The notes: generated from the letters alone by a model not told the origin. A stretch of 64,000 nt of DNA from Octopus bimaculoides (GCF_001194135.2 NC_068982.1:128712906-128776905), one strand, 5' to 3'. Counted from the stretch's first letter, positions 1-64,000 are shown. Numbers and translations are program-made.

Positions 1-39
1 TTGAGATAACCAGTGGGCCAACAGGTGGAGATGGCACAT
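1..39 (-). CDS. FN3 exon D73, class C, 3'-truncated by window
   Basis: ttttcag|AT GTG CCA TCT CCA CCT GTT GGC CCA CTG GTT ATC TCA = VPSPPVGPLVIS. Confidence 0.8.
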   Translation of the reverse strand, partial: MCHLHLLAHWLSQ

Positions 40-1751
40 CTGAAAATAGACAAATGAAAATAGGAGAAATAAAATATATGAAAAGTGATAAGCGTTACTT
101 TAGATTAAAATGGAGAATAAGCTGAATAGTATACAATTATGTGAAATGTCAATTCATTGGTTTATTTTGTTTTTGCTTACTAAATTTTTTTAACATACCT
201 ATACAGTATGATGAAAGTTATAAATAGAGTGAAGAACCTATTACTTTCAAAGTTTTTATAAGTTCATTGTAATGAGGCAAAAGAGAAGATGAAAATTGAA
301 AAAGATCACTTATATTGGCCATATTTAGAACAATATTCTTATTGTCAAAGCAGATTTAATAGAATTTAAGGTAAATGTTATTTTAATCAGCAAAATGTGT
401 TTTGGGGAAAAAAATGTATAATTCATTATAATGAAATGCAAGTGGAATATAATTTGTTTGAAATAAATTTATATTTGCTGTTCACTACTCTAAAATACTC
501 TTATACTTTTTTTTTAAAGCTGTCATGTTTCAATTACTCCTATTTTACCATGCTTTAAAATAGCTTAGCCTCAATTTGAACTTCATATTTAAGCAATACC
601 TTTTCCTTCTTTCTCATGAAAAAGGAAAATGAAACTAAAAGTAATGCCAAAACTGATCTATCCTTTAATATATCAATTTAATAAAATTGATATATTAAAG
701 GAGAGAGAGGAATGTTCAGTCCAAGAATATAATCTCTTTAGTTCAAAGTTTGTGTAAATATAAATCATCTTCAGTAACTTATCCTAATTTGATAGTGCCA
801 TATTTGTATGTATGTTCTTGTGGAGATAAAATGAGCTATCTTGAGATAATGTGATCAGATGTCCCTTGGTATTTCTGCTCAATTTCTGTTAACTACATCT
901 TACATAGTCTGATAAGATTTCAGGTAGTCTCTTATGGTTAAATTATTTTAATCTATACTTGACTTCAATTCACATTTAATTCAACATTGCTGAAATTTTA
1001 CCAGAGTGTTTAATCCACCAAACATATTTATCTTATTTTCAAGTTTTTTATGCTGTGTATTTTCAATGCTTTTTTGGTTGTGTGCTCTTCTTATCCTCCA
1101 CTGTTCAATATTTTCAATTTATCCATTGTATTTAATTGCTTTCTTATCTGTTCTCTTTTGGTAACATCAGAGCCTATTTTCTATGTTAAGGGTGCTTTCC
1201 TACATTAATTCTATCTACATCAGATTTTCAGTAACATATTCTGAATCCTCTCATAAGTTCCTTATTTTCATGTTCCTCTTTCTTATTTATAATTCAATAC
1301 AATGATACAGTAGCAAATTTATGGGACAACTAGCATGGTTACATTAATTATTTTGCATGCCCTATTTCAATTTCTGAGTATTGCTGAATAGTGGAAGCTA
1401 TAGTCACATAGAGAACCGAACAATATCTACTGACTCTATTTTTCCTTTGGCTTGTAATTTCTGGCAATCTTCTTCCATCTGGATGATATGATGGACTCTA
1501 AGATAGATCGGAGGGCCTAAAGATAGATATTTTATTCCAGGGTTAAACCACTGTCAAGTTGGAGAGGAAGGTAAGGGGGGAAAGAGAGGTGTCACAATCC
1601 AGTAAATTTACTGAATAGTAAGTGACAGTAATCTTCACTACACAATATTTTGTAAGCACAAAAGATTTTATTTTATTTATATATCAACAGTAAAATATCA
1701 ACACCATACTCACAACAAAAATAGAACTAAAATATTTAAAAAGAAACTTAC

Positions 1752-2057
1752 CAAATGGACTACGAGCTAAAGTAGCTGCGTCTGTCTCAAGAGGTGGACT
1801 CTGTCCAATCTTGTTGACTGCAATAACTCTGAAGAGATATTCATTCTTCTCATAAAGGCCTTTAACACACATTTCATATGTTGAAGCATCCACTTGATCT
1901 ACCCTACTCCATATATGGGCTTTAGTATGCTTCTTCTCAACATTGTAAGCAATAATTGGTGAACCACCATCATCCTTTGGTGCCTTCCATTTAATACTGA
2001 TGCTAGTACGTTGGACATCAGTAATGTCAAGAGGACCAGTAGGACATGAAGGTACAG
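1752..2057 (-). CDS. FN3 exon D72, class A
   Basis: VPSCPTGPLDITDVQRT...LARSPF; 306 bp. Confidence 0.9.
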
Positions 2058-2234
2058 CTAAAAAGAACAAGGTAAAAACAATATTTTTAAATTGTTAAAA
2101 AATTAGAATTATGAAAATATTTAATTCTTTAAATTCTTATATATCTTCAGTTATTTTCATAAATATTTTTTATCTATTTCAAATCAATATTTTATGGAAT
2201 ATATCTGTAAATAGGTGTCATTTGAGATACTTAC

Positions 2235-2537
2235 TTGCTTCTCTTGTTGGAACAACAGCTTCAGGAAGTTCAGCAGACTTTCCAGGTCCAACTTTGTTTT
2301 CTGCAGTAACTGAGAAGTAATATTCAGTACCCTCAGTTAAGTCAGGTACACGGCAAGCTGTTTCTTTACCATCAATTGTCATCAGTTTGACCCAATCAGA
2401 TTTCTTATCTTTCCTCATTCTAATAATATATTTGAGAATAGCTGAACCACCGTCATCTTTAGGATGTCTCCATTGAAGATTAACAAAGTTTTTGCCCACT
2501 TTATTAGCCATGAAAGAAACAGGAATTCCAGGAGGCA
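2235..2537 (-). CDS. FN3 exon D71, class B
   Basis: PPGIPVSFMANKVGKNF...VPTREA; 303 bp. Confidence 0.9.
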
Positions 2538-3199
2538 CTAAAAAAGAGAGAAACATTGGTAAATAAATGCAGGTAATGTAAATTGAATACAAACATATAT
2601 AAAAATAAAAATCTTTATTTGTAGTGGAATGTAAAGTCAAAACTTGCATTTACATATGCTCCTTGTCTGTGTGTCTATCTGTCTGTATATCTATCTGTCT
2701 ACACAACTTTCTGATGTTTAAATATGCCTTATAGTCTTCTATTTAAAGGGAGAAAGAGAAACTGACAAAATATATTTCAACACTTATTTTTCTACAAGAC
2801 TACTACAAAGCTATCGCCAAATCCATCTCATTATTAAATGGGTTATTCTGATAGCAGAAGTTATTATCTACTATTTCCATCATTGTATATGATCTGAGCA
2901 GTCCATAAACTTCGATATATAATGTGAGCCATGATGGTAACTACTTCAGTATATTTGGTTCATCAAAAGTTTTGATTTAATGATATCCACAGTTTGTAAT
3001 ATTGTCACAATCGAATTTCATCCTATTCTTTGTAAAAGACACTCAAAGACATTTTTGTACCAACTGTAACTAACCACTATCTTCATCTCTATAAATATAA
3101 CATTCAAATATAATTTTTCAAGTTTCAAATCTCTTCAAATTTGTGTGTGAATATGGAGAATAAATTTACATTCATACATATCAAGTACTGAGCTTATAT

Positions 3200-3590
3200 T
3201 GGGAATTGCACTGGCCTGGCTCTCCATCAGTTAGGTTATGATTACAAGTATTGCAGTTGATTTGATCAATGGAACAATCAGCCCGTGAAATTAATGTGCA
3301 AACGGCTGAGTATTCCACAGACATGCTACCCCTTAATGCAGCTCTAAGGGATATTCAATGTGACACACTAAATGTGACAAGTACGGCCCATTGAACTACA
3401 GATGCAATTCATTTTTGCCAGCTGAGTGTACTGGAACAATGTGAAATAAAGGGCCTTAGTCATAAGGTCATGAGTTCAGTTCTTGGCGGCACATTGGCCA
3501 GGGACACAAAGTGCCACCAGGAATTGAACTCATGACCTTATGACCAACAGCTGAACAACCTAGCCACTAAGATATGCACCTTCACACTAA
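3200..3590 (-). mobile_element. tRNA-derived SINE with an internal inverted duplication
   Basis: Minus strand has cttagtgg (A-box-like), gagttcaattcc (B-box-like) and the body ttcacattgttccagtacactcagctggcaaaaatg shared with the copy at 20914; boundaries approximate. Confidence 0.65.
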
Positions 3591-3714
3591 AGTACCAACA
3601 GAGTCAATTTTTTTATGCGCTTCCAATGGACTATTACATTTTTATTCAATGTAACATTAACCTTATGTATTTGTACATTACTCTGGTTAAAATGATATAA
3701 ACAATATGTATTTT

Positions 3715-3742
3715 ACACACACACACACATATATACATATAG

Positions 3743-3785
<43 letters not shown>
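3715..3785. repeat. Compound microsatellite (AC)(AT)(AGAT)(AG)
   Basis: Read directly; adjacent to the D70 donor. Confidence 0.95.
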
Positions 3786-3791
3786 ACTTAC

Positions 3792-4097
3792 TTATTTCTC
3801 TTGTTGGTATTGTTGATTCTGATGTCTCCAAGGGTGGACTTTCTCCTTCCTCATTGACAGCAATCACACGGAAGTAATATTCTGTACCCTCGACTAAACC
3901 TGTAACTCTGGCAACAGTAGATTTAGGATCAACCTCTTCTGCTTTGTTCCAAGACAAACGTGCAGCAGATCTTACTTCAACAACATATTTAGTGATTGGA
4001 GTGCCTCCATCACTGTCCGGAGCTCTCCATTCAAGATCAACATAGTCATAAGAGACTTTGGTAACTTCAAGAGGTCCTTTAGGACGAGATGGTACAC
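3792..4097 (-). CDS. FN3 exon D70, class C' (near-identical to D61)
   Basis: VPSRPKGPLEVTKVSYDYVDL...IPTREI; 306 bp. Confidence 0.9.
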
Positions 4098-4871
4098 CTA
4101 AAATGAAGAAATTTAAAGAATGGATGTTTTAAGATAATTCTCTATAATTAAACATGAAGATAAAAATGAATTTGAGTAATTTCTTTTTATTTACAAATCT
4201 ATTTTCAGCAGTTTATAAAAGCATCAAGAAGTAAGTTAGAATTAACTCTATATAACTCATATATATTTTGTCCTTTTCATTACTGTTTATGATAACAAAA
4301 AGAAATATGCATGTGAAACACATATCGGGGTAAAAATATAACTTATGATCTTCTTACACCTAAATTTGTCCAAAATTTGTAGATAAATTTGAAAGCTTAA
4401 TGTAAATAATTCTGAATACTCCACTCAAAGACTTAGATATCTTTAGAAATTCACTGTTCATTGGACACACATTCAACCATAAAAATTTATTTAAAAAAGT
4501 TTATGAACACAAAGTTTTATATAATCAAATTAATTATGCAAATTAAAAAATACAAAGGTATGCATGTGTTTTATGCATTTCAGGGTAATAAGTGAGTGAA
4601 ACTCAACGTGTGCTGTGAAGTCAGATGACAAGTAGAGTTCCAAAGATATTTTTAATTTCATGAGGTTGTTAAAGTAAAATTATCTTAAGATATTTGTTCA
4701 AAAGTGCTATTCACACATTTATTTTTTGCAATAGATTAACTCAAAGATGTTATTTACATTCTTCAACATTCAAATGAATGTTTGAATTATTGGAAATAAA
4801 ATGTAGTATTTTCAAATAAGGTGGCATGGAAACAAATACAATAGAAGATAATATAAAGAGTGGATACTTAC

Positions 4872-5177
4872 TGAAAGAGCTCTTGGCCATTGTTGAAGCT
4901 TCAGTCTCTAATGCATCACTGTGACCAATTTTATTGATTGCAGTAACTCTGAAGTCATATTCACAGTTCTGTCTCAGATCCTCAACGCGGTAGTTGGTCA
5001 CTGAGGGTGCTACCTTAGCCACATTGTTCCAGTATTGTCTATTAGCTTCTTTCTTCTCAATAATGTAACCAGTGAGAGGACTACCTCCATCATCTTCTGG
5101 AGCTTTCCAGGAAATGGAAATAGATGTTTTCTCAATATCATAGGTTTTCAGAGGACCAATTGGTTTCGATGGTTTTT
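4872..5177 (-). CDS. FN3 exon D69, class A' (near-identical to D60)
   Basis: KPSKPIGPLKTYDIEKT...MAKSSF; 306 bp. Confidence 0.9.
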
Positions 5178-5279: not shown

Positions 5280-5873
5280 NNNNNNNNNNNNNNNNNNNNN
5301 NNNNNNNNNNNNNNNNNNNNNNNNNNNNNNNNNNNNNNNNNNNNNNNNNNNNNNNNNNNNNNNNNNNNNNNNNNNNNNNNNNNNNNNNNNNNNNNNNNNN
5401 NNNNNNNNNNNNNNNNNNNNNNNNNNNNNNNNNNNNNNNNNNNNNNNNNNNNNNNNNNNNNNNNNNNNNNNNNNNNNNNNNNNNNNNNNNNNNNNNNNNN
5501 NNNNNNNNNNNNNNNNNNNNNNNNNNNNNNNNNNNNNNNNNNNNNNNNNNNNNNNNNNNNNNNNNNNNNNNNNNNNNNNNNNNNNNNNNNNNNNNNNNNN
5601 NNNNNNNNNNNNNNNNNNNNNNNNNNNNNNNNNNNNNNNNNNNNNNNNNNNNNNNNNNNNNNNNNNNNNNNNNNNNNNNNNNNNNNNNNNNNNNNNNNNN
5701 NNNNNNNNNNNNNNNNNNNNNNNNNNNNNNNNNNNNNNNNNNNNNNNNNNNNNNNNNNNNNNNNNNNNNNNNNNNNNNNNNNNNNNNNNNNNNNNNNNNN
5801 NNNNNNNNNNNNNNNNNNNNNNNNNNNNNNNNNNNNNNNNNNNNNNNNNNNNNNNNNNNNNNNNNNNNNNNNN
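5280..5873 (-). other. Assembly gap (594 N) probably hiding class B exon D68
   Basis: Both flanks match the introns flanking D59 (5180-5279 with 11375-11476; 5874-5961 with 11850-11937), and the B-A-C order needs a B exon here. Confidence 0.7.
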
Positions 5874-5961: not shown

Positions 5962-6267
5962 CAATCTTTCTCATTGGTTTTGTGACATCAGTAGATTCAA
6001 GTGGTTTACTTTGTCCTTCAGCGTTAACAGCAAAGACACGGAAATGGTAACTTGTGTCTTCTGTAAGATTTGGTACTGTAAATGTGGTAGTTTTCTCATT
6101 AACAGTGCCTGCTTTAGTCCAGAAGGTTCTGGAATCTACTCTGTGTTCAATAATGTATCCAGTTATTGGTGTACCACCATCATTGGCAGATGGTTTCCAG
6201 CTCAAGTCAGCAGAATTATTGGTGACATTTGTGATCTCCAATGGACCAACTGGTGCAGATGGCACAT
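5962..6267 (-). CDS. FN3 exon D67, class C (near-identical to D58)
   Basis: VPSAPVGPLEITNVTNNSADL...KPMRKI; 306 bp; donor gtgtgt. Confidence 0.88.
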
Positions 6268-6469
6268 CTAAGAAATAGAAAGGAAATATATGTAATATGA
6301 CACTTACTATATTGCTGTTATTGATAAATATTACTGAAAATTCAGTTGGCTCATTTTACCTTTTCAATGAAAATACTTTTGTTATTTCAATTATTTTAAC
6401 GTAACATTTTGTTTTACTATTAAAAGCAAATTTCAAAAAATACATTCAATATATAATGGCTAAACTTAC

Positions 6470-6775
6470 CAAATGGACTTCTGGCCATTGTAGCATCCCT
6501 AGTTTCCAAAGGTTCACTCTCTCCAATTTTGTTTTCAGCAATCACTCTGAAGTGATACATGGTTCTTTCTTGGAGATCCCTAACACAATAATCTGTGATG
6601 TCAGCACGAACTTTCTCAACCTTTGACCAGTATCGAGCAGACTCGGGACGTTTTTCTATGATGTATCCAATAATAGGAGAACCGCCATCATCAGATGGTG
6701 CTTTCCATTTGATGCTGATAGATTTACGCTGGACATCGGTAACAGTAAGAGGACCAATTGGTTTGGATGGAATTA
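6470..6775 (-). CDS. FN3 exon D66, class A (near-identical to D57)
   Basis: IPSKPIGPLTVTDVQRK...MARSPF; 306 bp; manual translation. Confidence 0.88.
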
Positions 6776-6921
6776 CTGAAAGTAAATTTATAATTTATAT
6801 AAACATCTTTCTTTAAACACTTCTGTCTACTTTTAACCAGATTATAATTTCAAATATACACGATATTCTAATTTCAAGTATAAATTTATTTTTCTGCAAA
6901 TATTCAAGTGAAAATACTTAC

Positions 6922-7224
6922 AAAGTCCCTTCTTTGTAGTGACAGGTTTCGATGTTTCAGTAGCTTCACCTTTTCCAAGTTTGTTTTCAGCACATACAGA
7001 GAAATAGTAGTCCATATCTTCTTCAAGTCTAGTAGCTTTACAGAATGTATCGTAAGCTCCAACAGTTGCCAGTTTAGTCCAGTTTCCTAATTTATGTGGA
7101 GATATTTCAACATGGTATTTAGTAATTGGTGTTCCTCCATCTGATTTTGGTTGATTCCACTCAAGTTCAACAAAGTCTTCACCAACTCTGCTAGCTCGGA
7201 CATTGACAGGTGGTCCTGGTAGTG
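6922..7224 (-). CDS. FN3 exon D65, class B
   Basis: LPGPPVNVRASRVGEDF...TKKGL; 303 bp. Confidence 0.9.
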
Positions 7225-7610
7225 CTAGAAAAAATTTGAACATTGTATTATTTTAAACGTTTTAAGATTAGGATAATAGGAACGCTTTAAGATTAGGATA
7301 CTAGTGTTTGACAAATATTGATAAGGTACGATGTGAAATACATTAAAAATGTGATTATGTATTTTCTGTCAATTAATGATTTTCAGCTTTCAAGTTATTA
7401 GTCATAGCTTTTCACTCTCAATGAATTGTCCTTTGGGTACAGTATTAATTCATTTCTTGAGAATTTAATTGGTATTAGAGTCTATTAAGGAAAGGGGAAA
7501 AGCTGTGTAGTAAGACCCAACTAACTGGTTATTGACATGTAGTGACAAGATTAAATCATTTTCAATGGTGACATTACATATATACACAGACTTTACATAT
7601 GTATGTGTGA

Positions 7611-7731
7611 ATGTATGTATGTATGTATGTATGTATGTATGTATGTATGTATGTATGTATGTATGCATGTATGTATGAATGAATGAATGCAAGCATGTGT
7701 CTATGTTTGTGTGTGTGTGTGTGTGTGTGTG
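7611..7731. repeat. Compound microsatellite (TATG)n, (TGAA)n, (GT)n
   Basis: Read directly. Confidence 0.95.
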
Positions 7732-8000
7732 TTCATACATGTATATATGCTGTTATAAATTGAACTCTCATCTTTCTTGATCTCATATATCTTTCCACCA
7801 TTATAATAGTTTCCATGTGGCCTTTTAGCTATTGCATATAAAGTAAATTTATGTTTACATAATATTGTTTACAGTGGGTAGGATAAAGTAAATTTATTGA
7901 ACTACCTGATCACATGGTTCATCAGCTCACTAGAGACACATTCTACACAATTTTGTTTAAATTTCGATATTATACTCAACATTAGTTAACTATAACTCAC

Positions 8001-8303
8001 CAAGCTCCCTCATTGGTTTAACAGAATCTGATTCCAAAGGACGGCTGTGCCCTTCAGCATTGACAGCAATAACTCTGAAGAAATATTCTGTTCCTTCCAT
8101 CAAATTGCTGCATGTATATGTTGTCTGTTTTGGATCCACTGTTGCTGCCTTTGACCATGTAGATCTAGTAGCAGTTCTGTATTCTATCAAATATCCTGTT
8201 ATGGGTGTTCCACCATCTTTTTCAGATGGTTTCCATTCAAGATCAGCTGAATTGTAGGTGACATTTGACACAGCAAGTGGCCCAACAGGTGGAGATGGTA
8301 CAT
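8001..8303 (-). CDS. FN3 exon D64, class C
   Basis: VPSPPVGPLAVSNVTYNSADL...KPMREL; 303 bp. Confidence 0.9.
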
Positions 8304-8595
8304 CTGTAAATACAAAGTAGGATGATATTGTGCATCATGTTGGAATACAATGAGATGATAAGGATTTCATTTTATTATACAATGATAATTATTTGCTATT
8401 ACAAATACATTTAATTGAATTTTTAATGTATTTTTTTCAGAAAAATTAAACATGTATTGCAATAAAATTATGAAATTTTTGGTAGACCTAAAAAGTGTTA
8501 CTGATAGTGATATAATGTATAAAAATTAAAATACATGTTAAGGAAATATAATTCATGTTAAACAGTTGAACCAGAAGTAACAGAAGACGTCATAC

Positions 8596-8901
8596 CATAA
8601 GGACTTCTTGTGAGTATAGTAGAATCAGACTCAAGTGGGACACTCTGACCAATTGCATTTATGGCCATGACTCTAAATAGGTACTCATTCTTTTCATATA
8701 GATTTCGGACACACATTTCAAATGTTGAGGTATCCACTTGATCAACTCTGCTCCATAACAGTGCTCTGGGATGTTTCTTTTCCACCTTATATCCAATAAT
8801 TGGTGAACCACCATCGTCCTTTGATGCTTTCCATTTAATATTAATGCTGGAACGTTGAACATCAGTGATATCAAGAGGACCAGTTGGTATAGAAGGTACA
8901 G
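8596..8901 (-). CDS. FN3 exon D63, class A
   Basis: VPSIPTGPLDITDVQRS...LTRSPY; 306 bp. Confidence 0.9.
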
Positions 8902-9038
8902 CTGAAAGATTTTCAAATGCAAGGAAAAAATCAAATATATTGTATAGCTTGAAATAGTACACTGTTTAAATACATATATGAGATCAATCGTAAATAAAGA
9001 TGAACCAAATAGAGGATAAAATAAAATGTTTTACTTAC

Positions 9039-9341
9039 TTGCTTCTCTAAGAGGGATGATAGCTTCAGAAATCTCTGCCATCTTGCCAAAACCAGCTTTG
9101 TTTTCAGCACAGACAGCAAAGTAATATTCAATGCCTTCTTTCAAATGTGTTGCTCTGAAACTTCGGCTGCTACCATCAATAGTCACCATAGTTTGCCATT
9201 CACTCTTTCTGTCTTTCCTTGATTTTATTGCATATTTTGTTATCTTAGAACCACCATCATCTTTAGGATGCTTCCATTCAAGATTCACAAAGTCTTTACC
9301 AATCTTTGTAGCCGTAAGATTAACAGGAGGTCCAGGTGGCA
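9039..9341 (-). CDS. FN3 exon D62, class B
   Basis: PPGPPVNLTATKIGKDF...IPLREA; 303 bp. Confidence 0.9.
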
Positions 9342-9487
9342 CTAATAAAGTAAAATATGATAAGTAAAATATAGTTTCTTAGAAAAATGAAGCAATTACT
9401 CAGAAAATAAAATAACTATCTATTCTACAAATTCATCCAAACATAAAATCACACATAAATACATATACGAGTAACTTTTTGACTTAC

Positions 9488-9793
9488 TTATTTCTCTTGT
9501 TGGTATTGTTGATTCTGATGTCTCCAAGGGTGGACTTTCTCCTTCCTCATTGACAGCAATCACACGGAAGTAATATTCTGTACCCTCGACTAAACCTGTA
9601 ACTCTGGCAACAGTAGATTTGGCATCAACTTCTTCTGCTTTGTTCCAAGACATGCGTGCAGCAGATCTTACTTCAACAATATATTTAGTGATTGGAGTGC
9701 CTCCATCACTGTCAGGAGCTCTCCATTCAAGATCAACATAGTCATAAGAGATCTTGGTAACTTCAAGAGGTCCTTTAGGACGAGATGGTACAC
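9488..9793 (-). CDS. FN3 exon D61, class C' (YVDL)
   Basis: VPSRPKGPLEVTKISYDYVDL...IPTREI; 306 bp. Confidence 0.9.
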
Positions 9794-9862
9794 CTATAAT
9801 AAGAAATACGGAGATTACCAAATTAATGAAAACAAGTTCATAAGTATTCAATAGAAGTATAT

Positions 9863-9916
9863 CCCTAAAATATATTTAAATGTGGTACTCCCTAAAATAT
9901 ATTTAAATGTGGTACT
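9863..9916. repeat. 27-bp perfect tandem duplication
   Basis: ccctaaaatatatttaaatgtggtact x2, directly before the LINE fragment. Confidence 0.9.
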
Positions 9917-10178
9917 CCCCTACAGGGAGCGACTGAAGGCACTAGGTCTCTACTCCCTGGAGCGCAGGCGGGAGAGATATGTAATAATATACATATGGAA
10001 AATACTGGAAGGACTGGTGCCAAACTTTGGTATCAAGTACTACAGGAATGCCCGCACGGGTCGCCACTGCATGGTGCCAAAGGTACCGTCCACTGCATCT
10101 CACATAAGAACGAGATACTGCAGCAGCCTCGGTTTCAGAGGACCTCAGCTCTTCAATGCCCTGCCAAAACATTTGAGA
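9917..10178 (+). mobile_element. 5'-truncated non-LTR retrotransposon (LINE) fragment, C-terminal end of RT ORF2, CR1/L2-like; runs into the gap at 10179-10471
   Basis: YRERLKALGLYSLERRRERYVIIYIWKILEGLVPN...GFRGPQLFNALPKHLR resembles the post-RT tail of CR1/L2-group LINEs (from memory); GC-richer than its flanks; antisense to the host gene. Confidence 0.75.
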
Positions 10179-11066
10179 NNNNNNNNNNNNNNNNNNNNNN
10201 NNNNNNNNNNNNNNNNNNNNNNNNNNNNNNNNNNNNNNNNNNNNNNNNNNNNNNNNNNNNNNNNNNNNNNNNNNNNNNNNNNNNNNNNNNNNNNNNNNNN
10301 NNNNNNNNNNNNNNNNNNNNNNNNNNNNNNNNNNNNNNNNNNNNNNNNNNNNNNNNNNNNNNNNNNNNNNNNNNNNNNNNNNNNNNNNNNNNNNNNNNNN
10401 NNNNNNNNNNNNNNNNNNNNNNNNNNNNNNNNNNNNNNNNNNNNNNNNNNNNNNNNNNNNNNNNNNNNNNNTATATATATATATATATATATGTGGACAA
10501 AATCACATTCTTGCACTGCCCCCACCCCACAACTTTGTTTCTTCATAACTTTCTGAAAAATGCATCACTATTAATGAACTTTGTATTGGTATGTTCTTTA
10601 TAACATAGATTAAGATTATACTGATGACATACAAAACAATTTTTGAGAAGTTTTGGATCAATCCACCCCCACCCCCATCTATTGACTTTGTTTCCTCATA
10701 ACTCTTGAAGATTCACATTTTGAGACCAAAGTTTGCAGAAATATATTTTCATGAATGTAGATTATGTAATATAGGTGGCTTAAGTATATGTATTTGGGGA
10801 AACTGAGGAAGGAGAAAATTATTTAAATCTCTTCCATCAAAAAATCGCATCTATAAATTCTATCAACATAACAGTACTTCACATCTGAGAAAACATATCC
10901 CTTCAAAATTTCATTCACAAATATGCTTTTCTTCAAAAAGTCATGAGTAAGCATATTTGGAACAGCACTAAATTGCAGTTGCCTATGTGTGTGCACAAAA
11001 GAAAATCAAACAAACAAATAGAGGTGGAAATATGGCATAAAATATAAATCCAAATATATGACTTAC

Positions 11067-53464: not shown

Positions 53465-53610
53465 GGCTTCTTTCAGTTTCCAACAACCAAATTCATTCAC
53501 AAGGCATTAGGTACTTTAGAAGACATTTTGCCAAGGTATCACACAATGGGACAGAGCCCAAAATCATGTGGTTGAGAAATGAACTACTTAAACACACAAC
53601 CATGCCTGTG
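53465..53610. mobile_element. SINE-like fragment
   Basis: ggcttctttcagtttcc...caaattcattcacaaggc matches 41845-41890 (ggtttctttcagtttcc...caaattcactcacaaggc). Confidence 0.5.
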
Positions 53611-53791
53611 CACATACATACATTTTCTAAAGGAATCAGTTAATTTGCTCAATAGCATGCTACTATGTAATATTTATTTTCATAAATTATATTGACTGTT
53701 AAAGTTATATGAAGTATTTCAAAACATAATCTTAGATCAAAACATTTGCCAAACCAGGCAAATTTCATATTTACAAAAACAAATACTTTAC

Positions 53792-54097
53792 CTATACGTG
53801 CTGTACATTTTGTTACATCATCTGCTTCCAGTGGAGGACTCTGTCCTTCTGCATTGACAGCAATGACTCTGAACCAATACTCAGTACCTTCTTCAAGGGC
53901 CATTGCAGTATAAGTTGTTGTTTTTCCATTTACACTGCTGAGTTTTTTCCATCCAGTGCAATATGAAGGTTTAATCTCAATAATGTAACTTGTAATAGGT
54001 GTACCACCATCCTCTTTGGGTGGCTTCCATTCAAGATCAGCAGAATTTGTGGTGACATTTTTGATCTCAAGAGGACCAATTGGAATTGATGGGCAAT
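53792..54097 (-). CDS. FN3 exon D10, class C
   Basis: CPSIPIGPLEIKNVTTNSADL...KCTARI; 306 bp; AAG acceptor. Confidence 0.88.
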
Positions 54098-54608
54098 CTT
54101 TGAAACAGAACAGAAATTAAATATATTGAAATGTCATCAGTATCTTCCAATATTAAAAATTAATTTTCTTTATTCAGTTTATTCAAATACTTAAACATAC
54201 AAAAGTACATTAATCATTGTGATAGACAACTAATTAAAATCAAATGTTGATAAATTTAGTTTTATCTCTATTAAACCAGAAACATAAAATTTATATTCAT
54301 AATAATAATTTTATTGAACAAAACTATTTAATTTATCATAAAAGTATTTGCCATTCTTATTGAATAAAATTATCTAATTTAATATATAAATAGATAAATA
54401 ATACTTGCCAAATTTATTCAACAAAACTACTTAAACTATCATAAAAATAGATTATATTTTCTAATTTTATTGAATAAAATCAATTTATTTTAAAATAAAC
54501 GATAATAATAATATCTGCCAAAACAATAAATTATAAAGAAATGGAAAACACAGAAAGCAATTTAGACTTATAAAAATGCTCAAAAATATGTTATGAATAT
54601 CAACTCAC

Positions 54609-54914
54609 CAAAAGGACTTTTAACTAAGGTTGCTTCCTTTGTTTCCAAAGGAGGACTTTGGCCAACTTTGTTAACAGCAATCACTCTGAAATGATATTTG
54701 GTTTTCTCAGTAAGATGGGTTGCAGTGTAGGTTAAAGTGGAGTCATTGACTTTGCCAGCCTTTGTCCAATTTGTTATAGATTCTTCTCTATATTCAATGA
54801 TATAGCCTGTAATTGGTGAACCACCATCATTTTCAGGTTCTTTCCATTTGATAGATATGGCATCACGTTTGACATCTGTAACTTCAATGGGACCAACACA
54901 CATTGATGGGACTT
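54609..54914 (-). CDS. FN3 exon D9, class A
   Basis: VPSMCVGPIEVTDVKRD...LVKSPF; 306 bp. Confidence 0.9.
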
Positions 54915-55369
54915 CTGAAACAAAAAGGATAAATAACATATAGTATCTATAGTATCACTTCCTTTTTAAATATGCATAAAATATAAAATAATTTTCATAG
55001 TAAATAATGATTTATTATTAACTATTTCAATTAATATTTTCTTATTATCAAGACATACTTCTTATGATATCTGATAATTAAAGGGGTGGGGGTGTTACCC
55101 TAAAGTTAGCTTTATTTGATAGTTAATATGAGGTTATGATTTCAGTCCTTACTGGGAGTTCTAAAATATGGGGACAAAGGACTTGAAGAAAATATTTTGC
55201 TTTTATCAAGTTTAAATAATAGAGAAAATTTGTTTTATAAAACCAAACTGAAGTTTGTCTTTTATAAAATTGCTGTTTAAATTTAGAAATATTTTTCTTG
55301 AAATATCATAATCAAGAGATTATGATTAAATTCAAATATTCTATTTTGCATATTTTACTTGTTTCAAGA

Positions 55370-55545
55370 TTGTGGCCATGCTGGGGTACCAGCATGAAGG
55401 GCTTAGTCAAACAAATCAAACCCAGCCCATATTTTTAAAGTCTGATACTTATTCTATTAGTCTCATTTGCTGAACTGCTACATTATGGGGATGCAAATAA
55501 ACCAACACTAGTTGCCAAGTGGTGAGATGGAGACAAACACAAAAG
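55370..55545. mobile_element. Dispersed repeat, third family, second copy
   Basis: Aligns by eye to 41440-41630; followed by CA-rich repeats as in the other copy. Confidence 0.5.
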
Positions 55546-56074
55546 CACACTCATGAGTGTGCATACACATACACGCACATGCACACACACACACACATAC
55601 AATGGGCCTCCACACAGTTACAGAATGTATATCAAAAGATAACATAGAGTGAAATATTAACTTTACATAATTATTTTACTTTTAATAAATTACAACATTT
55701 ATCTTAGAAAATCCTAAAAATATTTTCTATGATCTAGTTCCTAAATAAATCTATTTGTCAAGGAGCAATAGGAAATATCATTCTTAAATCAATAACAACT
55801 AGTATGATAGCATCTATCCTGAGCATCACATCAAGTCAACAAGCAATTGGGGCACCTAAAGAGTTTGAGATCATTTTACACAAATGAAAATCCATCTGAC
55901 TACACTAAAATCTAAAAAATGCTCTGAGTGTATCAAAAACACCAACAGAATGAAAAAGTTAGAGGCTCAATTCTACACTAAATCAAAGTATAAACTTATT
56001 TTTATTTAATAATACATCTGTTATTGTAAGGTGAATCTCTCCACAACATTAGTACAATTGTATATGAAACTTAC

Positions 56075-56374
56075 TTGGCTTTTTCACAAGAGTGATCTTT
56101 TTCGATTCACATGAATCGCTTATTCCAGCTTCATTTTCAGCAAAAACAGCAAAATAGTAATCAGTATCAGGTTCAGCATTTTTCAGTTTATACTTCCTGT
56201 CATATTCATCAATTTTGGCAACATCTTCCCATTTGTCACTAGCTTTGTGTTTCTTTTTAAGAATATATTGGGTGATCTTTGATCCACCATCATTCTTAGG
56301 TGGTTGCCACTCAAGTTCAATGAAATCTTCACCCGTTTTAGTTGGTTTCAAATTAATCGGTGGTCCTGGTCGGG
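56075..56374 (-). CDS. FN3 exon D8, class B
   Basis: RPGPPINLKPTKTGEDF...LVKKP; 300 bp. Confidence 0.9.
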
Positions 56375-56461
56375 CTGAAAAGCAAATGCACATAAAATGT
56401 CAAAAATATTGCAAAAATACTTCTGTTGTAAAACATTGAAGAAATTAGTCATGTTGTTTAA

Positions 56462-56681
56462 CCCTTTAGCATTTGAACTGACCATATCAAGCCCAAATAT
56501 TGTATATGCTTTATGGTCAAACAAAGAGATCTGGCTTCTCACGCCTACTCTACAACTTCTACTCTAAAACTAAGCAATCATATCATTGAAACCTAAAAGT
56601 TACAAGATAATACATGATTAATTTAGAACTATGTGAATAAATAAGCATTACATTTGTTAAAGTAATCTGAATGCTAAAGGG
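56462..56681. mobile_element. piggyBac-like MITE (220 bp)
   Basis: Perfect 12-bp TIRs ccctttagcatt / aatgctaaaggg, flanked by TTAA and CTAA; CCC...GGG ends with a TTAA target are piggyBac hallmarks. Confidence 0.75.
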
Positions 56682-56760
56682 CTAATCATTTATTTGAATT
56701 TTAGATTGTAAGAAAAAAATAAGACAAATACGAAAACATAGTGTGGAAAAAAATAGTTAC

Positions 56761-57066
56761 CAATTTTCTTTTTAATAATGGTTGTATCAGCAGCCTCCAA
56801 TGGCTCGCTTTTACCTTCTGCATTGACTGCTATCACTCTAAACTGATATTCTGTTCCTGCTGATAGATCAGGCACTGTAAATGTTGTAGATTTACCATCA
56901 ACACTGCCAGTTTTAGACCAAGATGATCGTGAAGCTTGTTTATACTCAATGATATAGCTAGTAATTGGTGTTCCGCCATCACTTTCTGAAGGTTTCCATC
57001 GAAGATCAGCAGAGTTTGATGTAACATCAGTTACCTCAAGAGGTCCTCTTGGTTTTGAAGGAACAT
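56761..57066 (-). CDS. FN3 exon D7, class C (P[KR]GPL subtype)
   Basis: VPSKPRGPLEVTDVTSNSADL...IKKKI; 306 bp. Confidence 0.9.
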
Positions 57067-58322
57067 CTGAAATATATATATTCATATGATTATATAGTTT
57101 ACTATACAAATTGTTAAATCACATTATTATGTCATTTGTGTGTGTTTAAGTGTATACACATGTGATATGTTTACAGCGCTGTAAAATTTATAATCATATT
57201 TTAGACAAACTGAAATTTTACAACACTTGTATTTGTAAATGAGCTGTAAAACTAGAAAACCAAATAATTCTCTTAAGACAATATCCTACAAATCTAATGC
57301 AATCCTCTGAAGTACCTTTAAAATACACCAAAAGGCTCATTCTCAAGATGGAATATGAGACAGTGAATATCTTAAGCTAATGGCCATTAATATCTGTCTA
57401 ATCATTTCCAAGAAGATTTACAGTCATATGATGCAAAATAACATATCAAATTATATGTAATGTCCTGATGTCAAATGACATCTGATGTAAAAGTTTTCTG
57501 ATGGGAATGTACAAATAGAATTGTATTTTAATGTATTAGAAATATTCTCCTTAGGAGAAACCTTGTTAAATATTTGTTATTGCTACATCAAATATTAGTG
57601 TTAGAGACAATTCAATCAGGTGAGGTAGGTCACTGGCCATAAACCCTGAATATTATTATAGATTTATCACAACTATAATTATTGGAACAAATGATTATGT
57701 AAAAACCATATGATAGGTCAGGATTCTGGATTCATTGTATTAAAAAAGAAAAGAAACAGCTGACTTAAACTAAATCAATTAGTGGCATGAAAGCAACATT
57801 CAAATTTTGTCTAAAATTGCAGTGTTTGACTTAAGCTGTCAGTTGATCAATTATTGTATTTATTGAATTATGTATCTACTTTTATTGTAGTGACTAGTGA
57901 AAATCACTAGTGCCTAAAGAATTCAACTGAGGGATGGATACCTGAGTTTAACAGACCCATTATCTATCAACTATAAAATACAACGATGAGCATATGTATC
58001 TAATAATCAGAGTAACAGTTCAAATTACAGAGCAATGCAGACTAAGAGAACTGTAAAAATCCTGGTTTGCTGTAAAATACTGGAACAGCTTCTCCATGCA
58101 AACAAGGTCGCTATTGTTACAGAGTTGACTTGTTCCTTCACTCCATCATTTAGGTGAAGTGTAGCCTTTTCTGAGTTAGCTGCTCTGACCATAGATGCAA
58201 AACAACCTCTGCTTTCTTTGATGCTATCTATTACCCTGTCTATCTCCCCTTGTATTGCAGTGAACAAGCTTATATGAAATGCAGTGTATGATATTTTAAT
58301 TACAAGTTACAAGGTTACTAAC

Positions 58323-58628
58323 CAAATGGACTTCTTGCAAGAGTAGTATCTTTGGTTTCTAAAGGTTCACTTTGGCCAATCTTATTGACAGCAATTACTC
58401 TAAACAGATATTCTGTTTTCTCAGTAAGGTATGGGCAACGTAATTTTGTAGTACTTTCATCCACTTTTTCAACTCGTTGCCATTTCATTTGAGCTGGTTC
58501 CTTCCTTTCTACTATGTAGCCAGTGATGGGAGAACCACCATCATCTTCAGGCATTTTCCACTGAATTGTGATGTTATCTCGTTGGACATCAATGACATCA
58601 ATAGGTCCCACAGGTTTGCCAGGGGCAG
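58323..58628 (-). CDS. FN3 exon D6, class A
   Basis: APGKPVGPIDVIDVQRD...LARSPF; 306 bp; donor gttagt. Confidence 0.9.
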
Positions 58629-59478
58629 CTACAAAAATATAAATAAAATAATGATTATAAAATCCAGAATTAATTATTTCCTAAGTTACAAGAAAATCAG
58701 GCGAAAACTGGCTATAGTATTGATGAACATACCATATTTGGTATGCAAAAAAAGCTTTGGATGAAATTTAAGATTATGAAGGTTAGACAAATATTTTAAG
58801 GCTATATGCATATAAATAACTAAACACACACACACACATATGCACATGCATAATACATATATGCATAAATATACATATTTATAAATGTCAATTAATGAAT
58901 AACAAAAGAACAAAAATTATGTAATTAATTTCATTAGCTTACAGCTATTTCTACAATAAGAAGCATACATTCAGAACTAAGTGTTCGTGCAACATCTTAT
59001 AGCTTCCTCTGAGCCAACACATACATGTGTCTGTGTCTATTTATCTTTCTATCTGTCTGTCTTTCAGTATGTATGTACGTATGTTTATATACATACTCAC
59101 ACACATGAATAAAAAGAGAGTCAAAGAAAGTTGATGAGAGTCTTTATGATACTCATGTGAAAAACAGAGAAATCTGAAGTAAGTTGTTTCAGAGCAAGTA
59201 TGAATTAAAGACACAATGTTAAAATTATGTTTACAAAAATTAGGGTGATACATGTATCACATATGAATGAAAACTATAATTGCTTTAAGTGAGTTGAATT
59301 AAATGAAATAATTAAATCTATAAAATGCTTAGCAGTAGCATAGCAATATCTTGAGCATCAACAAGTACTGTTATATATTATTATTATTGTTATTAAATGG
59401 CAATTTATTGATATATGTGATATGTCCATATTTAATTTGATATAGGGGTCTCAAAATGTACAATCAAAGATTACTTAC

Positions 59479-59778
59479 TTGGTTCTCTTTTTGGTACTAC
59501 TTTCTCTGTTTCTGCCGCTGGACCAACACCAGCACTATTTTCAGCACATACAGAGAAGTAATGCTCAACATTTTCCTTGAGGCCTTTAACTTTGTAGGTC
59601 AATTCAAATTCACTAGTGGTGGCCACTTTCTCCCAATCACCAGTTGCCTTTATTTTCTTTTTCAAGTGGTAAGCTGTAACCTTGGAACCTCCATCAACTT
59701 TTGGTGCCTTCCATTGCAGAGTAGCAAAATCTGCACCAACTTTGTCAACAGTAAACTTGATTGGTGGACCAGGAGGCT
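59479..59778 (-). CDS. FN3 exon D5, class B
   Basis: PPGPPIKFTVDKVGADF...VPKREP; 300 bp. Confidence 0.9.
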
Positions 59779-60244
59779 CTGATATTACAAAAAACACATG
59801 CATTATTATAATTAACAAACCACATCATTATCAGATATCTATATAAGGAATTACTATTGCATCTCTAAGACCAATATTGTAATCTGATTAAACTAAAAGG
59901 GTATAACTTCAATTATTTAATGGTAATCCACTCTTTGTTAAAATTTGGAATCTTTTTTATGCCAACTTATTTTGAAGATATTCAACATTTTGAAAATATC
60001 AGTATTTACTGCATATGCTTGCATATAAGTTATAACATGTTCACATTATTTTTGTTTCAATTTTTCACCCATATTGTTTTTCATAAATACTGTACACAAT
60101 ACTGCATGAAATATCGTTAAAAATCGAAAAACTGAAAAAATCCCAATCATAACCAGTATTGTCTAGCAAAGTTCCAGAATCATAGGTACCATCGTAATGT
60201 GTTTCTATAATCAATGTCTGGAATCATCAACATCACCATCATCA

Positions 60245-60435
60245 TTGTCGTTTAACGTCTGCTTTCCATGCTAGCATGGGTTGGACGATTTGACTGAGGA
60301 CTGGTGGACCAGGTGGCCACACCAGGCTCCAATCTGATCTGGCAGAGTTTCTACAGCTGGATGCCCTTCCTAATGCCAACCACTCTGAGGGTGTAGGGAT
60401 GCCCTTCCTAACACCAACCAGTCCGAGAGTGGAGG
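60245..60435 (+). mobile_element. Retroposon-like fragment with an internal duplication
   Basis: GC-rich island; ggatgcccttcctaa(tg/ca)ccaacca occurs twice in tandem; follows an (ATC)n tract. Confidence 0.5.
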
Positions 60436-60587
60436 AATGTTCAGATTAAATGATACTTTTAAATCACCATGCCTGATTGACTGGCATTATAGGCAAAAAC
60501 TAATAGGAATAAGAATTATTGCAGGGAAATGGTGCTGTTAGTCAATGTTTTAAATAGGAATAAAGAAGAACATTAAATCTGTCTTAC

Positions 60588-60893
60588 CAATTTTTCTAGT
60601 TGGTTTGGTTGTATCAGTAGCTTCAAGAGGAGCTCCGACACCTTCATCATTTACAGCACTAACACGGAAAATGTATTCTGTATCTTCCAGCAAACCAGTT
60701 GCAGTGAAAGTTAATGTTTTACCATCAACATTGCCACATTTTCCCCATGTTGATCTGGTTGCTGTCCTGTTTTCAATAATATAACCTGTGATAGGAAGAC
60801 CACCATCACTTTTAGGTTTCTTCCATTCAAGATCAGCAGAGTTTATAGTGACATTGCTTATTTCCAAAGGTCCAATAGGAGCTGATGGAACAG
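60588..60893 (-). CDS. FN3 exon D4, class C
   Basis: VPSAPIGPLEISNVTINSADL...KPTRKI; 306 bp. Confidence 0.9.
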
Positions 60894-62219
60894 CTGAAAA
60901 AACAATACAAAAAGAATGTCTGTCAAGAATCTGAAGATGTTTTACCCTTTCACATTATTAAAAGTTTATCAGGTCATCTTTTAATAATAATATGGAGCTA
61001 AACAGCCTAAATTTCAGTCCGGCAAAAGGTATATTTAAACTGAGGAGAATTATTAATGATAAATTTGGATTCCATATAAATTTTCCATCAAGTTGAAAGC
61101 ATTTACATCTGAGGCGATGTCATCTACATTATAGTGCTACTACCATCACCCCTACCAACACCATCATCACTCACAAAATAACTTTTCATATATCCCAACT
61201 TCCATAGATCATATCACTAGGCTTTATTGATTAAAGTTAGGTATTATTTTTCAAGTTTTAAGTTTTATTTATCAAGATTTTTGTTTCATAGTGTGATAGG
61301 AAAAAGAAAATTAAAAGTAGTTTAGTGCAGCTTTTGAGTGCAACTCAAGCTATATATTGATAGAATAAATGTCAACATTAGGCCTCAGTTCAAGCATTTA
61401 TTAGAGAGTTTAGTATTATTCAGTACTTTATATGTTGAGGACCAAGCTGTCATTGCAGAATCTGTTAAAAACTAACAACAAACTAGAAAATTGGCTGCCC
61501 CAGTTATACAAGAGTATATCAAAGCAAGAGCACACATGAAATGAAATCCATAATCTGTTTCTATGCCTAACTAGGAACTGTATATCGTTTTGTTTACTAG
61601 TTAATATACTCATTACTGGAATTGATTGAGTGAAATTAAAAATTGGTAAAGTGTTAGAAAAGCTTTTGTTGGTGACAAAATGCTTTTTACAAAATGCTTT
61701 TTTTCAGTAAGAGAACAGAATGTACAAAAATGTGTTAAAAGTGTAGGATGCATCAATATAGAGAGACATGTGCATTAAATAAAGAATCTTTGAGAAGACT
61801 GGAGAGGAATACATTGATTATGATTTCTGGGCTATGCAACATTCATTTACTGTTAGCATTAAAGATATTAGTTATTGTGGAAAGGAGTAACTATAAGGTA
61901 TAAACCTCTGATGGATAGTATTTGCTGAGAGACAAAAAACTGCTGTGAACAGACATTAGAATACACTAGAATCAGGAAAAATTAATAAAAGACAGGGAAA
62001 GACGTGGGAAGTTAAACTTGAGGGATTTGGGCCTCTATTACATAGACCAGATAATTCAGGACGAAGTAAAATTGCAGTTTACTATATTGAACAACCATTC
62101 AAAGTGATGTTAACATGGAAAATTGATATTAAAGCAATGCTACAAATGATAAATATTGATGTCTTTGATTCATTATGTTACAAAATAGACTTATAAATTC
62201 AAAACATTTTGAAACTTAC

Positions 62220-62519
62220 AGTATGGACTCTTGGGAGTAACTGCCTCACTTTCCAAAGGAGGACTTTTTCCAATTTTGTTAACAGCAGTAACTCTGAAGA
62301 AATATTCTGTGTTCTCAGTCAGTCTTGGCACATGAAGCTTGGTAATATTTCCCTCAACTTCATCAACAATAGTCCATCGGCCATATTTGTCTTTCTTTTC
62401 AACAATGTAACTGGTAATTGGTGAACCACCAGTGTCTTTTGGAGGCTTCCAATCAAGATCCACAGATGTCTTTTGAATATTAGTGACATTAAGTGGACCA
62501 AGTGGACTGGATGGAGCAG
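62220..62519 (-). CDS. FN3 exon D3, class A
   Basis: APSSPLGPLNVTNIQKT...TPKSPY; 300 bp. Confidence 0.9.
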
Positions 62520-63265
62520 CTGTAAATAAATATAATGTAATTAATTATATGACATACCTATAAATTAAGTTTATTATTCACATCGTTACTTAAACCTTTG
62601 CAGTAAATTTTTTTTTAATCCTTAGATTCAGATCATAATAGATTTTTTTTTATATATTCATATGTAAATAGACATTTGTTTAAACTAAACTATTTAACAA
62701 ATTCATTCACCCCAGCCATATAAGGTTATTTACTTTAGTATTGAGGCGTACAAACTGATACTTTACAATTAAATTATAAATTGTCATCATTCAGAGGTGT
62801 AGTGTTGTAATCTGTTTCTCAGTTTAACACCACTAGCTGGCTCTTGAGTACTGTTAACAGAGTAAATTCAATTGCAATCTTGGGGGCCAGAAAACTTATT
62901 TGAGAATAACTTCTTCCTACATGTCAGATCAACTGAATGACCTTTTCTTTCAATTAACATGCAAAATGGCTGAACATTCTGTGCCCTTTATGTAATTCCC
63001 AAGTAGAATCAGTGTGACAAGACTTGACCACTAAATTAAAGGCACAATCCATTCGATGGGCTTTCACACAGTTTCTGTCTTCTTAATTTCACTTACAAGG
63101 CTTGGTTTGACCTGTTTTCATCCAAGTTTTCAGTCTCAAATTAATTGCATCAATACTATTCATTAAACAATAGCTTTCTGATTATTCTTATCCTAAAGAA
63201 TCTATAAAGTCCGTACAAGAATCTATTAAGTCATTAACTCTCAAAACATATTTTAAAATACTTAC

Positions 63266-63565
63266 ATGGTGGCCTAGAGGGAACAATTGCATCTCTTGTT
63301 TCACAAGGTTCACTGACCCCAACTGCATTTTGTGCAGAAACAGCAAAGTAATAGCCAATATCTTTAAGGTTGTTTACTCGGTAAGTGAGATTGAATGCTT
63401 TTGTTGTGCCAATCTTCTCAAAAACATCAGATTTTTCTTCGCATAATTCCAGAACATAGTTAGTCAAAGGACTGCCACCATCTTTCAATGGTGGTTCCCA
63501 TGATAATACAACATAATCAATACCAACATCTGTTCCTTTAAGGTTGACTGGTGGATCAGGTGGAT
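63266..63565 (-). CDS. FN3 exon D2, class B
   Basis: [14 protein letters not shown]...VPSRPP; 300 bp, AG/GT, phase 1. Confidence 0.9.
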
Positions 63566-63885
63566 CTGAAATGCATATTAATGTTTATAGAATCAATGAA
63601 AGATTGATGATCATATAAAGGTATATTAACTAACATATGTGTAATTAGTCATAATATAAATACATTTATCATAAGTGAGGTAACGAAATACATCTCAATC
63701 AAAAACATTATTTCTTAATGAACATGAGTACCTAAAGAAATATGTCAGACTTACAAAGTCCTTAAAATGTTCATAATATTGCCATTAAAATATTAGCATT
63801 AAATTGATGTATAATAATATCTATAAATAACTTTCTATCTTTTGTGCTCTTGCACATCTATACTATCAACAAAAAGTGTACTCAC

Positions 63886-64000
63886 TCATCTTTTTCATAG
63901 GTTTGATTGTTGCTTCAGCTTCCAAAGGTGGACTTTGCCCTTGATCATTAACAGCTATAACCCGGAATAAGTATTCAGTTCCTTCAATGAGATCTAAAGC
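63886..64000 (-). CDS. FN3 exon D1, class C, 5'-truncated by window
   Basis: Manual translation ...LIEGTEYLFRVIAVNDQGQSPPLEAEATIKPMKKM; donor gtgagt. Confidence 0.88.

Follow-up and report, generated by a model that had tools for sequence, protein, structure and literature searches.

At least 73 consecutive FN3 domains without a detectable Ig domain in a 64-kb segment of a probable titin-family gene of Octopus bimaculoides

Our analysis of a 64,000-nucleotide stretch of Octopus bimaculoides DNA (NC_068982.1:128712906-128776905, the window) reveals on its minus strand a chain of 65 complete exons, plus two exons cut by the window ends, which together encode at least 73 FN3 domains (70 complete, two partial at the window ends and one in an exon hidden by an assembly gap) and in which no Ig domain was detected. 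The FN3 domains fall into three classes, here called A, B and C, which succeed each other as C-B-A triplets and further downstream form a super-repeat of nine domains. The window is probably an internal segment of one very large titin/connectin-family gene. Judged from related sequences, it most likely represents an Ig-free zone of a titin-like gene with Ig domains elsewhere rather than part of an Ig-free protein, because the orthologous gene in the limpet Lottia gigantea has Ig domains upstream of its FN3 array, as does a gene model in the starfish Asterias rubens. The FN3-only layout itself exists, undescribed, in Lottia and in echinoderms.

Open stretches between stop codons that run to 75 codons or more are two times commoner on the minus strand, and nearly all of those there carry an FN3 signature. 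Exons were called from the AG and GT sites closest to the conserved tryptophan. Each complete exon is preceded by a polypyrimidine tract and an AG acceptor and followed by a GT donor (mostly GTAAGT), and all 64 complete introns have AG/GT borders and phase 1-1. The pattern is one FN3 domain per exon, apart from one fused exon of 1,827 nt with six domains; the other 64 exons measure 294-306 nt. The spliced product of the 65 exons is 7,105 residues long without a single stop codon, and a profile hidden Markov model (HMM) of our own, built from the exons, identifies 70 FN3 domains in it. These are spaced 98-102 residues apart along the product, and there are therefore no linkers between them. The Pfam model fn3 (PF00041) matches all 64 single-domain exons above its gathering cut-off (best E = 2e-20) as well as nine of nine stretches in each of two nine-domain samples. 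Whatever the assembly gaps hold, the frame is kept, since all exons have lengths divisible by three and are in phase 1-1. Both window ends fall within FN3 exons.

For the Ig search an HMM was built from 196 inter-FN3 segments (90-102 residues) of titin and twitchin database matches. As positive controls, this model recovers 107 of the 120 matched titin/twitchin proteins and detects both I-band-type and A-band-type Ig exons in a six-frame search of Lottia genomic DNA. Run without HMMER filters (--max) on the window, again in six frames, the model reached a best E-value of only 0.23; the strongest of these weak matches (E up to 1.2) sit on FN3 exons, and a few on the plus strand have E > 3. No Pfam match to I-set, Ig, Ig_3, V-set or Pkinase was found on any of the 64 single-domain exons, the ten longest non-exon open reading frames (ORFs) of the window matched no Pfam family, and Rfam and tRNA scans of the window returned no match.

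Class-specific HMMs arrange the domains into 22 successive C-B-A triplets; beyond the gap at 5280-5873 the order continues as B-A-C-B. At lags not divisible by 3 the domains have a mean identity of 0.36; this rises to 0.51 for lag 3 and to 0.59 for lag 9. The N-terminal part of the array, at high coordinates, consists of ten plain triplets (zone 1, D1-D30), where identity reaches 0.55-0.57 at lags divisible by 3, compared with 0.36 elsewhere, and no extra peak appears at lag 9. The super-repeats come after this zone: from D31 on every third triplet is a variant, giving the nine-domain unit (C'B'A')(CBA)(CBA), of which at least 4.5 copies are present. Within-class clustering sets D31-33, D40-42, D49-51, D58-60 and D67-68 apart as the distinct variant triplets. 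Over D28-D66, identity at lags 9 and 18 is 0.61 versus 0.49 at the other multiples of 3 (p ~1e-11), and this signal persists without the near-identical pairs of domains (p ~1e-6). A mapping of classes A, B and C onto titin or twitchin module positions by means of the class HMMs was tried and discarded, the score margins being too small. An earlier note, made by a model from the sequence alone, had read at least 72 consecutive FN3 domains and no Ig domain, a splice chain that stays in frame and a class order leaving no slot for an Ig exon. All of this holds, with the count now slightly higher, and of the profiles which that note named, fn3 matches every single-domain exon while I-set and Pkinase match none of them.

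Five runs of N (5280-5873, 10179-10471, 31463-31577, 35175-35184 and 41789-41798) interrupt the window, all five of them within introns of the exon chain. The flanks of the first match a paralogous copy some 6 kb away (4866-5276 versus 11061-11471, 98.8%; 5874-6297 versus 11850-12271, 97.9%), in which 378 nt lie between the flank points and enclose the 306-nt class-C' exon at 11493-11798. Because the flanks are colinear with a copy that encloses this exon, the gap hides one class-C' FN3 exon, and for the same reason the class order here skips one C, running from A straight to B'. Domain similarity likewise shifts from lag 9 to lag 8 at this gap, with a lag-8 identity of 0.96-0.98 for D59 and D60. 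Microsatellites, (TA)n or (GAA)n, flank each of the other four gaps on one side or both; the gap at 10179-10471 lies inside intron 9794-11066, and those at 35175-35184 and 31463-31577 inside introns 34617-35822 and 30755-32024. Since the exons next to these four gaps keep the expected class order, no single FN3 exon is missing there. If the estimated lengths hold, a gap-concealed Ig exon may fit only in the 293-N and 594-N gaps.

The best named relatives of the window are Lottia gigantea 'hypothetical proteins' (LOTGIDRAFT_141663, LOTGIDRAFT_141610 and LOTGIDRAFT_141638; 38-48% identity) and a fragment from Elysia chlorotica (EGW08_013891, 43%). Next come echinoderm models named 'titin-like' (Asterias rubens) or 'twitchin-like' (Diadema setosum and Amphiura filiformis), and then titin and twitchin at 29-37%. 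The public annotation of the orthologues consists of automatic names only. When the database matches were parsed into domains (F for FN3), twitchin-type proteins read FF-Ig-FF-Ig, or FF[95 aa Ig]FF, and titin FFF-Ig-FF-Ig, while FN3-only matches came solely from Lottia, echinoderms and a few nameless proteins. The Fn-Fn-Ig modules and Ig/FN3 super-repeats are thus visible in the matches themselves, which agrees with the claim that the window departs from the titin and twitchin layouts. On the Lottia scaffold KB200919.1, read from 240050 down to 190357, all features lie on one strand in the order 12 Ig, FFF, Ig Ig, FFF, Ig (Ig) Ig and then 44 FN3 domains up to an assembly gap of 7.6 kb at which the scaffold breaks, so that the FN3 run without Ig comprises at least 44 domains. 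This array has the same C-B-A order as the window, with good class-HMM score margins, and a period of 3 (identity 0.61 proximally); the primed variant triplets and the nine-domain unit were not found in this stretch. In the echinoderm stretches examined, Diadema setosum has ~33 FN3 domains without Ig in 25.7 kb and Asterias rubens ~42 in 22.7 kb, the Asterias gene model just upstream of the array holds Ig domains, and the score margins of the class HMMs were too small to assign the echinoderm domains to A, B or C.

In view of these arrays, the suggestion that the architecture is possibly lineage-specific is not supported. As for the 'Ig-free FN3 rod' also proposed, the Ig-free segment stands, and an Ig-free protein goes beyond the evidence, with Ig domains upstream in the Lottia and Asterias genes. 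The same note would have counted an already described orthologue of identical layout against novelty: full-text searches of the literature on molluscs, echinoderms and invertebrates in general turned up no account of a titin-like array made of FN3 alone. The same C-B-A array is present in the Lottia genome.

Some of the related sequences deserve mention in their own right. At about 215500-210600 of Lottia KB200919.1 (L005/L004), three successive triplets are 79-99% identical at equal positions, and the triplet is for this reason the unit of expansion in Lottia too; the sequences point to a very recent triplet-wise duplication or conversion. A contig from Logan SRR32558770 (L009, 1-5004) encodes 14 FN3 domains, 12 of them in one frame, nearly all abutting and without Ig, and could be either a transcript or an intron-poor orthologue. 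Eight teleost 'Titin' UniRef fragments (P0011, P0018, P0038, P0057, P0072, P0078, P0097 and P0117) and one from a turtle (P0087) show five to six FN3 domains in a row; either these gene models skip Ig exons or the FN3 runs of these titins exceed the textbook pattern. Three metagenome entries called 'predicted phage tail protein' (P0043, P0104 and P0156) are FF-Ig-FF-Ig or all-FN3 and, given their closeness to animal twitchin and titin, are likely to be mislabelled eukaryotic sequence.

The rival explanation that fares best would make the window a derived twitchin/projectin (unc-22) orthologue in which Ig was lost from every Fn-Fn-Ig module. Both share a three-domain period, NCBI calls the echinoderm relatives 'twitchin-like', and twitchin-type matches score just slightly under the orthologues. 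In contrast, the canonical FF-Ig proteins form a separate set of matches at 31-37%, whereas the Lottia and Elysia relatives reach 43-48%, and the long tandem-Ig run of Lottia with its Ig-FFF-IgIg transition modules resembles titin, not twitchin. The molluscan twitchins described previously have the Fn-Fn-Ig layout, which also speaks against this scenario, and we regard it as improbable.

Another scenario concerns the assembly, and here a contig of a related species (L001, Logan SRR11869394, 7.9 kb) is informative. It aligns to 42132-48706 at 88-92.5% DNA identity and is colinear with the window over 12 domains, among them the six of the fused exon (834-2651 of the contig). The exons are 96.2% identical without indels; 134 of 1,208 codons differ, 105 of them synonymously and 29 non-synonymously, and this ratio places the exons under strong purifying selection. 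At 2698-4192 the contig carries ~1.5 kb of extra intron sequence relative to window positions 45821-46005; otherwise its introns align at 88-92% with many indels. In the fused exon, which joins six FN3 domains, five introns have been lost, and since the contig has the same fused exon, this loss predates the split from the related species. Occasional two-domain exons were also seen in Lottia and in sea urchin.

Within the window, the block D65-D68 (3786-6814, plus the gap-hidden exon) is 94-100% identical in protein to D56-D60 (9482-12871), the identities of D65-D68 to their counterparts being 0.94, 1.00, 0.98 and 0.96. The blastn identity is 94-99% over exons and short flanks, and synonymous sites are alike as well. 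The B'-A' introns of the two copies (4098-4871 and 9794-11066) share no similarity. As the near-identical exons sit between unrelated introns, exon-limited gene conversion would seem to fit better than an assembly duplication, and their pattern looks like gene conversion within the gene. Could the domain count and the nine-domain rhythm nevertheless be inflated by assembly error, that is, by a collapsed or duplicated repeat or by tandem haplotypes? The five gaps, whose lengths are only estimates, and the near-identical exons D56-D60 and D65-D68 would be in keeping with such an error. Against it, same-class domains beyond the five near-identical pairs are just 27-76% identical and therefore distinct exons, the unrelated introns fit gene conversion better than a block copy, the nine-domain signal remains once the near-identical pairs are removed, the related-species contig is independently colinear over 12 domains, and Lottia and the echinoderms have the same kind of array. 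We give little credence to this explanation.

In a third scenario the window belongs to an extracellular or otherwise non-muscle protein with an FN3 rod, akin to tenascin, usherin or receptors, and its likeness to muscle FN3 is no more than a resemblance. Other long FN3 runs without interruption are known from extracellular proteins, and FN3_DSCAM-type Pfam matches occur on 59 of the 64 exons. When a C-B-A triplet was compared with PDB sequences, titin in the cardiac thick filament came first (8g4l, 9e-134; 8q6t), followed by titin FN3 tandems at 8e-47 to 4e-35 (8bnq, 3lpw), MyBP-C at 3e-33 and myomesin at 6e-27; extracellular FN3 ranked far behind (PTPRF 1e-20, Dscam 5e-19), with contactin trailing as well. 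By this ranking, which sarcomeric proteins lead by many orders of magnitude, the FN3 domains of the window are closer to those of the sarcomeric family (titin, twitchin, MyBP-C and myomesin) than to extracellular ones, in line with the initial reading of muscle-type FN3 of the titin family. Furthermore, every named eukaryotic database match is titin, twitchin or a '-like' form of them, and the Lottia array continues from I-set tandem Ig and titin-like Ig/FN3 transition modules. An extracellular rod is thus quite unlikely. It is hardly credible that the window, instead of a single transcript, contains several small, independent FN3 genes side by side or an array of copied exons in decay: the older Lottia gene models do break the array into several 'hypothetical proteins', but all 64 complete introns are AG/GT and phase 1, no exon has a stop codon, the pattern of non-synonymous versus synonymous change (dN/dS) indicates constraint, and the class order is rigid across 64 kb.

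For an internal titin/connectin-family segment, a role as a thick-filament scaffold can be inferred. The segment would form a stiff rod in which 73 or more beta-sandwich domains abut tightly; at 4.0-4.5 nm per domain it would measure ~0.3 micrometre. This rod would run along the myosin/paramyosin thick filament in the manner of the A-band part of titin, each class would offer a recurring binding surface, and each triplet would match a single axial level of myosin. That position-specific classes have been kept for hundreds of millions of years would imply ligands that recur every three domains. The nine-domain unit may then be a higher-order repeat, analogous to the 7- and 11-domain super-repeats of the titin D-zone and C-zone, and one FN3 class would occupy the slot that Ig holds in the Fn-Fn-Ig module of twitchin and projectin. 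The ligand lattice would be the myosin/paramyosin thick filament with its repeats of 14.3-14.5 nm and ~43-43.5 nm, to which the fit is approximate.

Several points weigh against this picture. The exon chain has been drawn only from conservation and matches to the splice-site consensus. The gene runs past the window on both sides, so that the tandem Ig region, the kinase, the start and the stop would all be located outside. In the Lottia stretch there is no nine-domain unit, and distally no period beyond a weak one of 6 or 12, and classes A, B and C do not map cleanly onto titin or twitchin module positions. Finally, three FN3 domains measure ~12-13.5 nm and nine ~36-41 nm, which is near, and not clearly equal to, the myosin repeats.

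A bolder idea, and in our view a doubtful one, is that the rod serves as an Ig-free length template of molluscan thick filaments, the triplet matching the 14.5-nm myosin level and the nine-domain unit the higher helical repeat. Because every domain is a separate phase-1 exon, exon skipping by threes or nines could set the length of the rod. If true, this could explain why the thick filaments of different muscle fibre types within an animal differ greatly in length, as in the tentacle and arm fibres of cephalopods. The same design in echinoderms would, if true, make an FN3-only A-band titin the ancestral bilaterian state and the Ig-interleaved pattern of vertebrates and ecdysozoans derived.

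The titin A-band is the textbook protein ruler, whose super-repeats of Ig and FN3 are taken to replicate the lattice of the myosin filament. The gene in the window follows a titin-like logic (position-specific classes, super-repeats, two zones) from FN3 alone and with orders 3 and 9. With an FN3-only array conserved from the limpet to the octopus and similar Ig-free arrays in echinoderms, interleaved Ig domains are not required for such an array, and the window offers a natural comparison for asking which features of the titin pattern are dictated by the thick filament. Scallop thick filaments are reported to carry titin-like 'end filaments', and unidentified high-molecular-weight proteins of scallop muscle were proposed as an invertebrate counterpart of titin (PMC2115703); the gene reported here is a candidate for such thick-filament proteins and 'end filaments' of molluscan muscle. 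The layout also bears on the relationship of titin, I-connectin and twitchin-projectin in bilaterians. In the searched text of their survey of connectin/titin evolution, Hanashima et al. (2025) include Octopus sinensis, oyster and sea urchin in their trees and leave this relationship undecided, and that text has no mention of an FN3-only layout (PMC12198301).

Table 1. Coordinates of FN3 exons and associated features in the window, based on the splice model, Pfam fn3 on single-domain exons, class HMMs and within-class clustering.
Feature	Position	Strand	Remarks
Partial exon, C-terminal half of class-A FN3 (D0)	63886..64000	-	translation ...EYLFRVIAVNDQGQSPPLEAEATIKPMKKM, then phase-1 GTGAGT donor; 5' part beyond window
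Zone 1, 25 exons, D1-D30, ten plain C-B-A triplets	38862..63565	-	splice model, Pfam fn3, class HMMs
Zone 1 exons D1-D5	63266-63565, 62220-62519, 60588-60893, 59479-59778, 58323-58628	-	
Zone 1 exons D6-D10	56761-57066, 56075-56374, 54609-54914, 53792-54097, 52933-53235	-	
Zone 1 exons D11-D15	51959-52264, 50398-50703, 49941-50240, 49138-49443, 48335-48640	-	
Zone 1 fused exon, 1,827 nt, six FN3, D16-D21 (C-B-A-C-B-A)	46045..47871	-	open frame of 624 codons
Zone 1 exons D22-D26	45474-45776, 44891-45196, 44275-44580, 43251-43544, 42165-42470	-	
Zone 1 exons D27-D30	40805-41110, 40218-40520, 39724-40029, 38862-39167	-	
Exon D31, class C', opens first nine-domain super-repeat (D31-D39)	37467..37769	-	
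Exon D32, class B'	36719..37024	-	
Exon D33, class A'	35823..36128	-	
Exons D34-D39 (C B A C B A)	34314-34616, 33404-33709, 32025-32330, 30458-30754, 29784-30089, 28615-28920	-	span 28615..34616
Super-repeat 2, D40-D48 (C' B' A' C B A C B A)	20524..27717	-	
Super-repeat 2 exons D40-D44	27415-27717, 26582-26887, 26185-26490, 25384-25686, 24211-24513	-	
Super-repeat 2 exons D45-D48	23545-23850, 22657-22959, 21523-21828, 20524-20829	-	
Super-repeat 3, D49-D57	11938..20233	-	
Super-repeat 3 exons D49-D53	19931-20233, 18281-18586, 17216-17521, 16442-16744, 15237-15542	-	
Super-repeat 3 exons D54-D57	13824-14129, 13011-13313, 12527-12832, 11938-12243	-	
Super-repeat 4, D58-D66	5962..11798	-	
Super-repeat 4 exons D58-D62	11493-11798, 11067-11372, 9488-9793, 9039-9341, 8596-8901	-	
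Super-repeat 4 exons D63-D66	8001-8303, 6922-7224, 6470-6775, 5962-6267	-	
Assembly gap hiding class-C' exon that opens super-repeat 5	5280..5873	-	colinear flanks, class order, lag-8 identity
Remaining super-repeat 5, D67-D70 (B' A' C B)	4872-5177, 3792-4097, 2235-2537, 1752-2057	-	span 1752..5177
Partial exon, start of next class-A FN3 (DVPSPPVGPLVIS...)	1..39	-	acceptor ...TTTTCAG|AT, phase 1; cut by window end

Apart from the coding exons, a 138-bp direct duplication (99.3% identical; 42889-43025 and 43608-43745) lies in the introns flanking the short class-C exon D25 (294 nt). Two pairs of interspersed intronic repeats (35310-35800 versus 51080-51572, 84%; 20886-21011 versus 41660-41788, 81%) are probably transposon remnants or remnants of short interspersed elements (SINEs); neither pair has a match in Rfam or to a tRNA, and the copy at 41660-41788 adjoins the gap at 41789-41798. 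Plus-strand ORFs of 108-126 codons lie antisense to FN3 exons at 49897-50277, 59456-59782, 5939-6271 and 11915-12247; they mirror coding exons and are not independent genes.

Among the known systems, the A-band of vertebrate titin/connectin comes close to the window in several respects. Both have muscle-type FN3 domains of ~100 residues without linkers, in both equal super-repeat positions are more similar than neighbouring domains, and both have two successive zones with different repeat orders, an organisation well established for the titin D-zone and C-zone. A tandem-Ig region, which in our case would be outside the window, precedes the orthologous array in Lottia (12 Ig), as in titin, and Ig domains occur in the upstream Asterias model. 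The window differs from the 7- and 11-domain Ig/FN3 super-repeats of titin with their interleaved Ig by having repeat orders of 3 and 9 and no Ig in at least 73 domains, and by giving nearly every domain its own exon; a counterpart of the titin kinase and M-band part would lie outside the window. With twitchin (unc-22) and projectin (bent) it shares the three-domain period and the domain family, at 31-37% identity. Their repeated modules are Fn-Fn-Ig, whereas the third slot in the window is FN3 and (CBA)n is FN3 throughout, and the long N-terminal tandem Ig of the relatives of the window is unlike twitchin. Extracellular FN3 rods stand further off, the affinity of the window to them being clearly below that to sarcomeric FN3; a signal peptide or accompanying extracellular modules would lie beyond the window ends. 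Sallimus, I-connectin and TTN-1 have a tandem-Ig region followed by FN3 domains towards the C-terminus, the arrangement also seen in the Lottia orthologue; their FN3 domains are few, in contrast to at least 73 in super-repeats here. A further comparison is with the orthologues themselves. The echinoderm models differ in that their domains are not assignable to A, B or C, and the Lottia orthologue in that its examined stretch has no nine-domain unit. In the stretches examined, the Lottia, Elysia and echinoderm orthologues share with the window Ig-free runs of 33 to at least 44 FN3 domains, about one domain per exon and a period of 3, and Lottia in addition shares its C-B-A class order.

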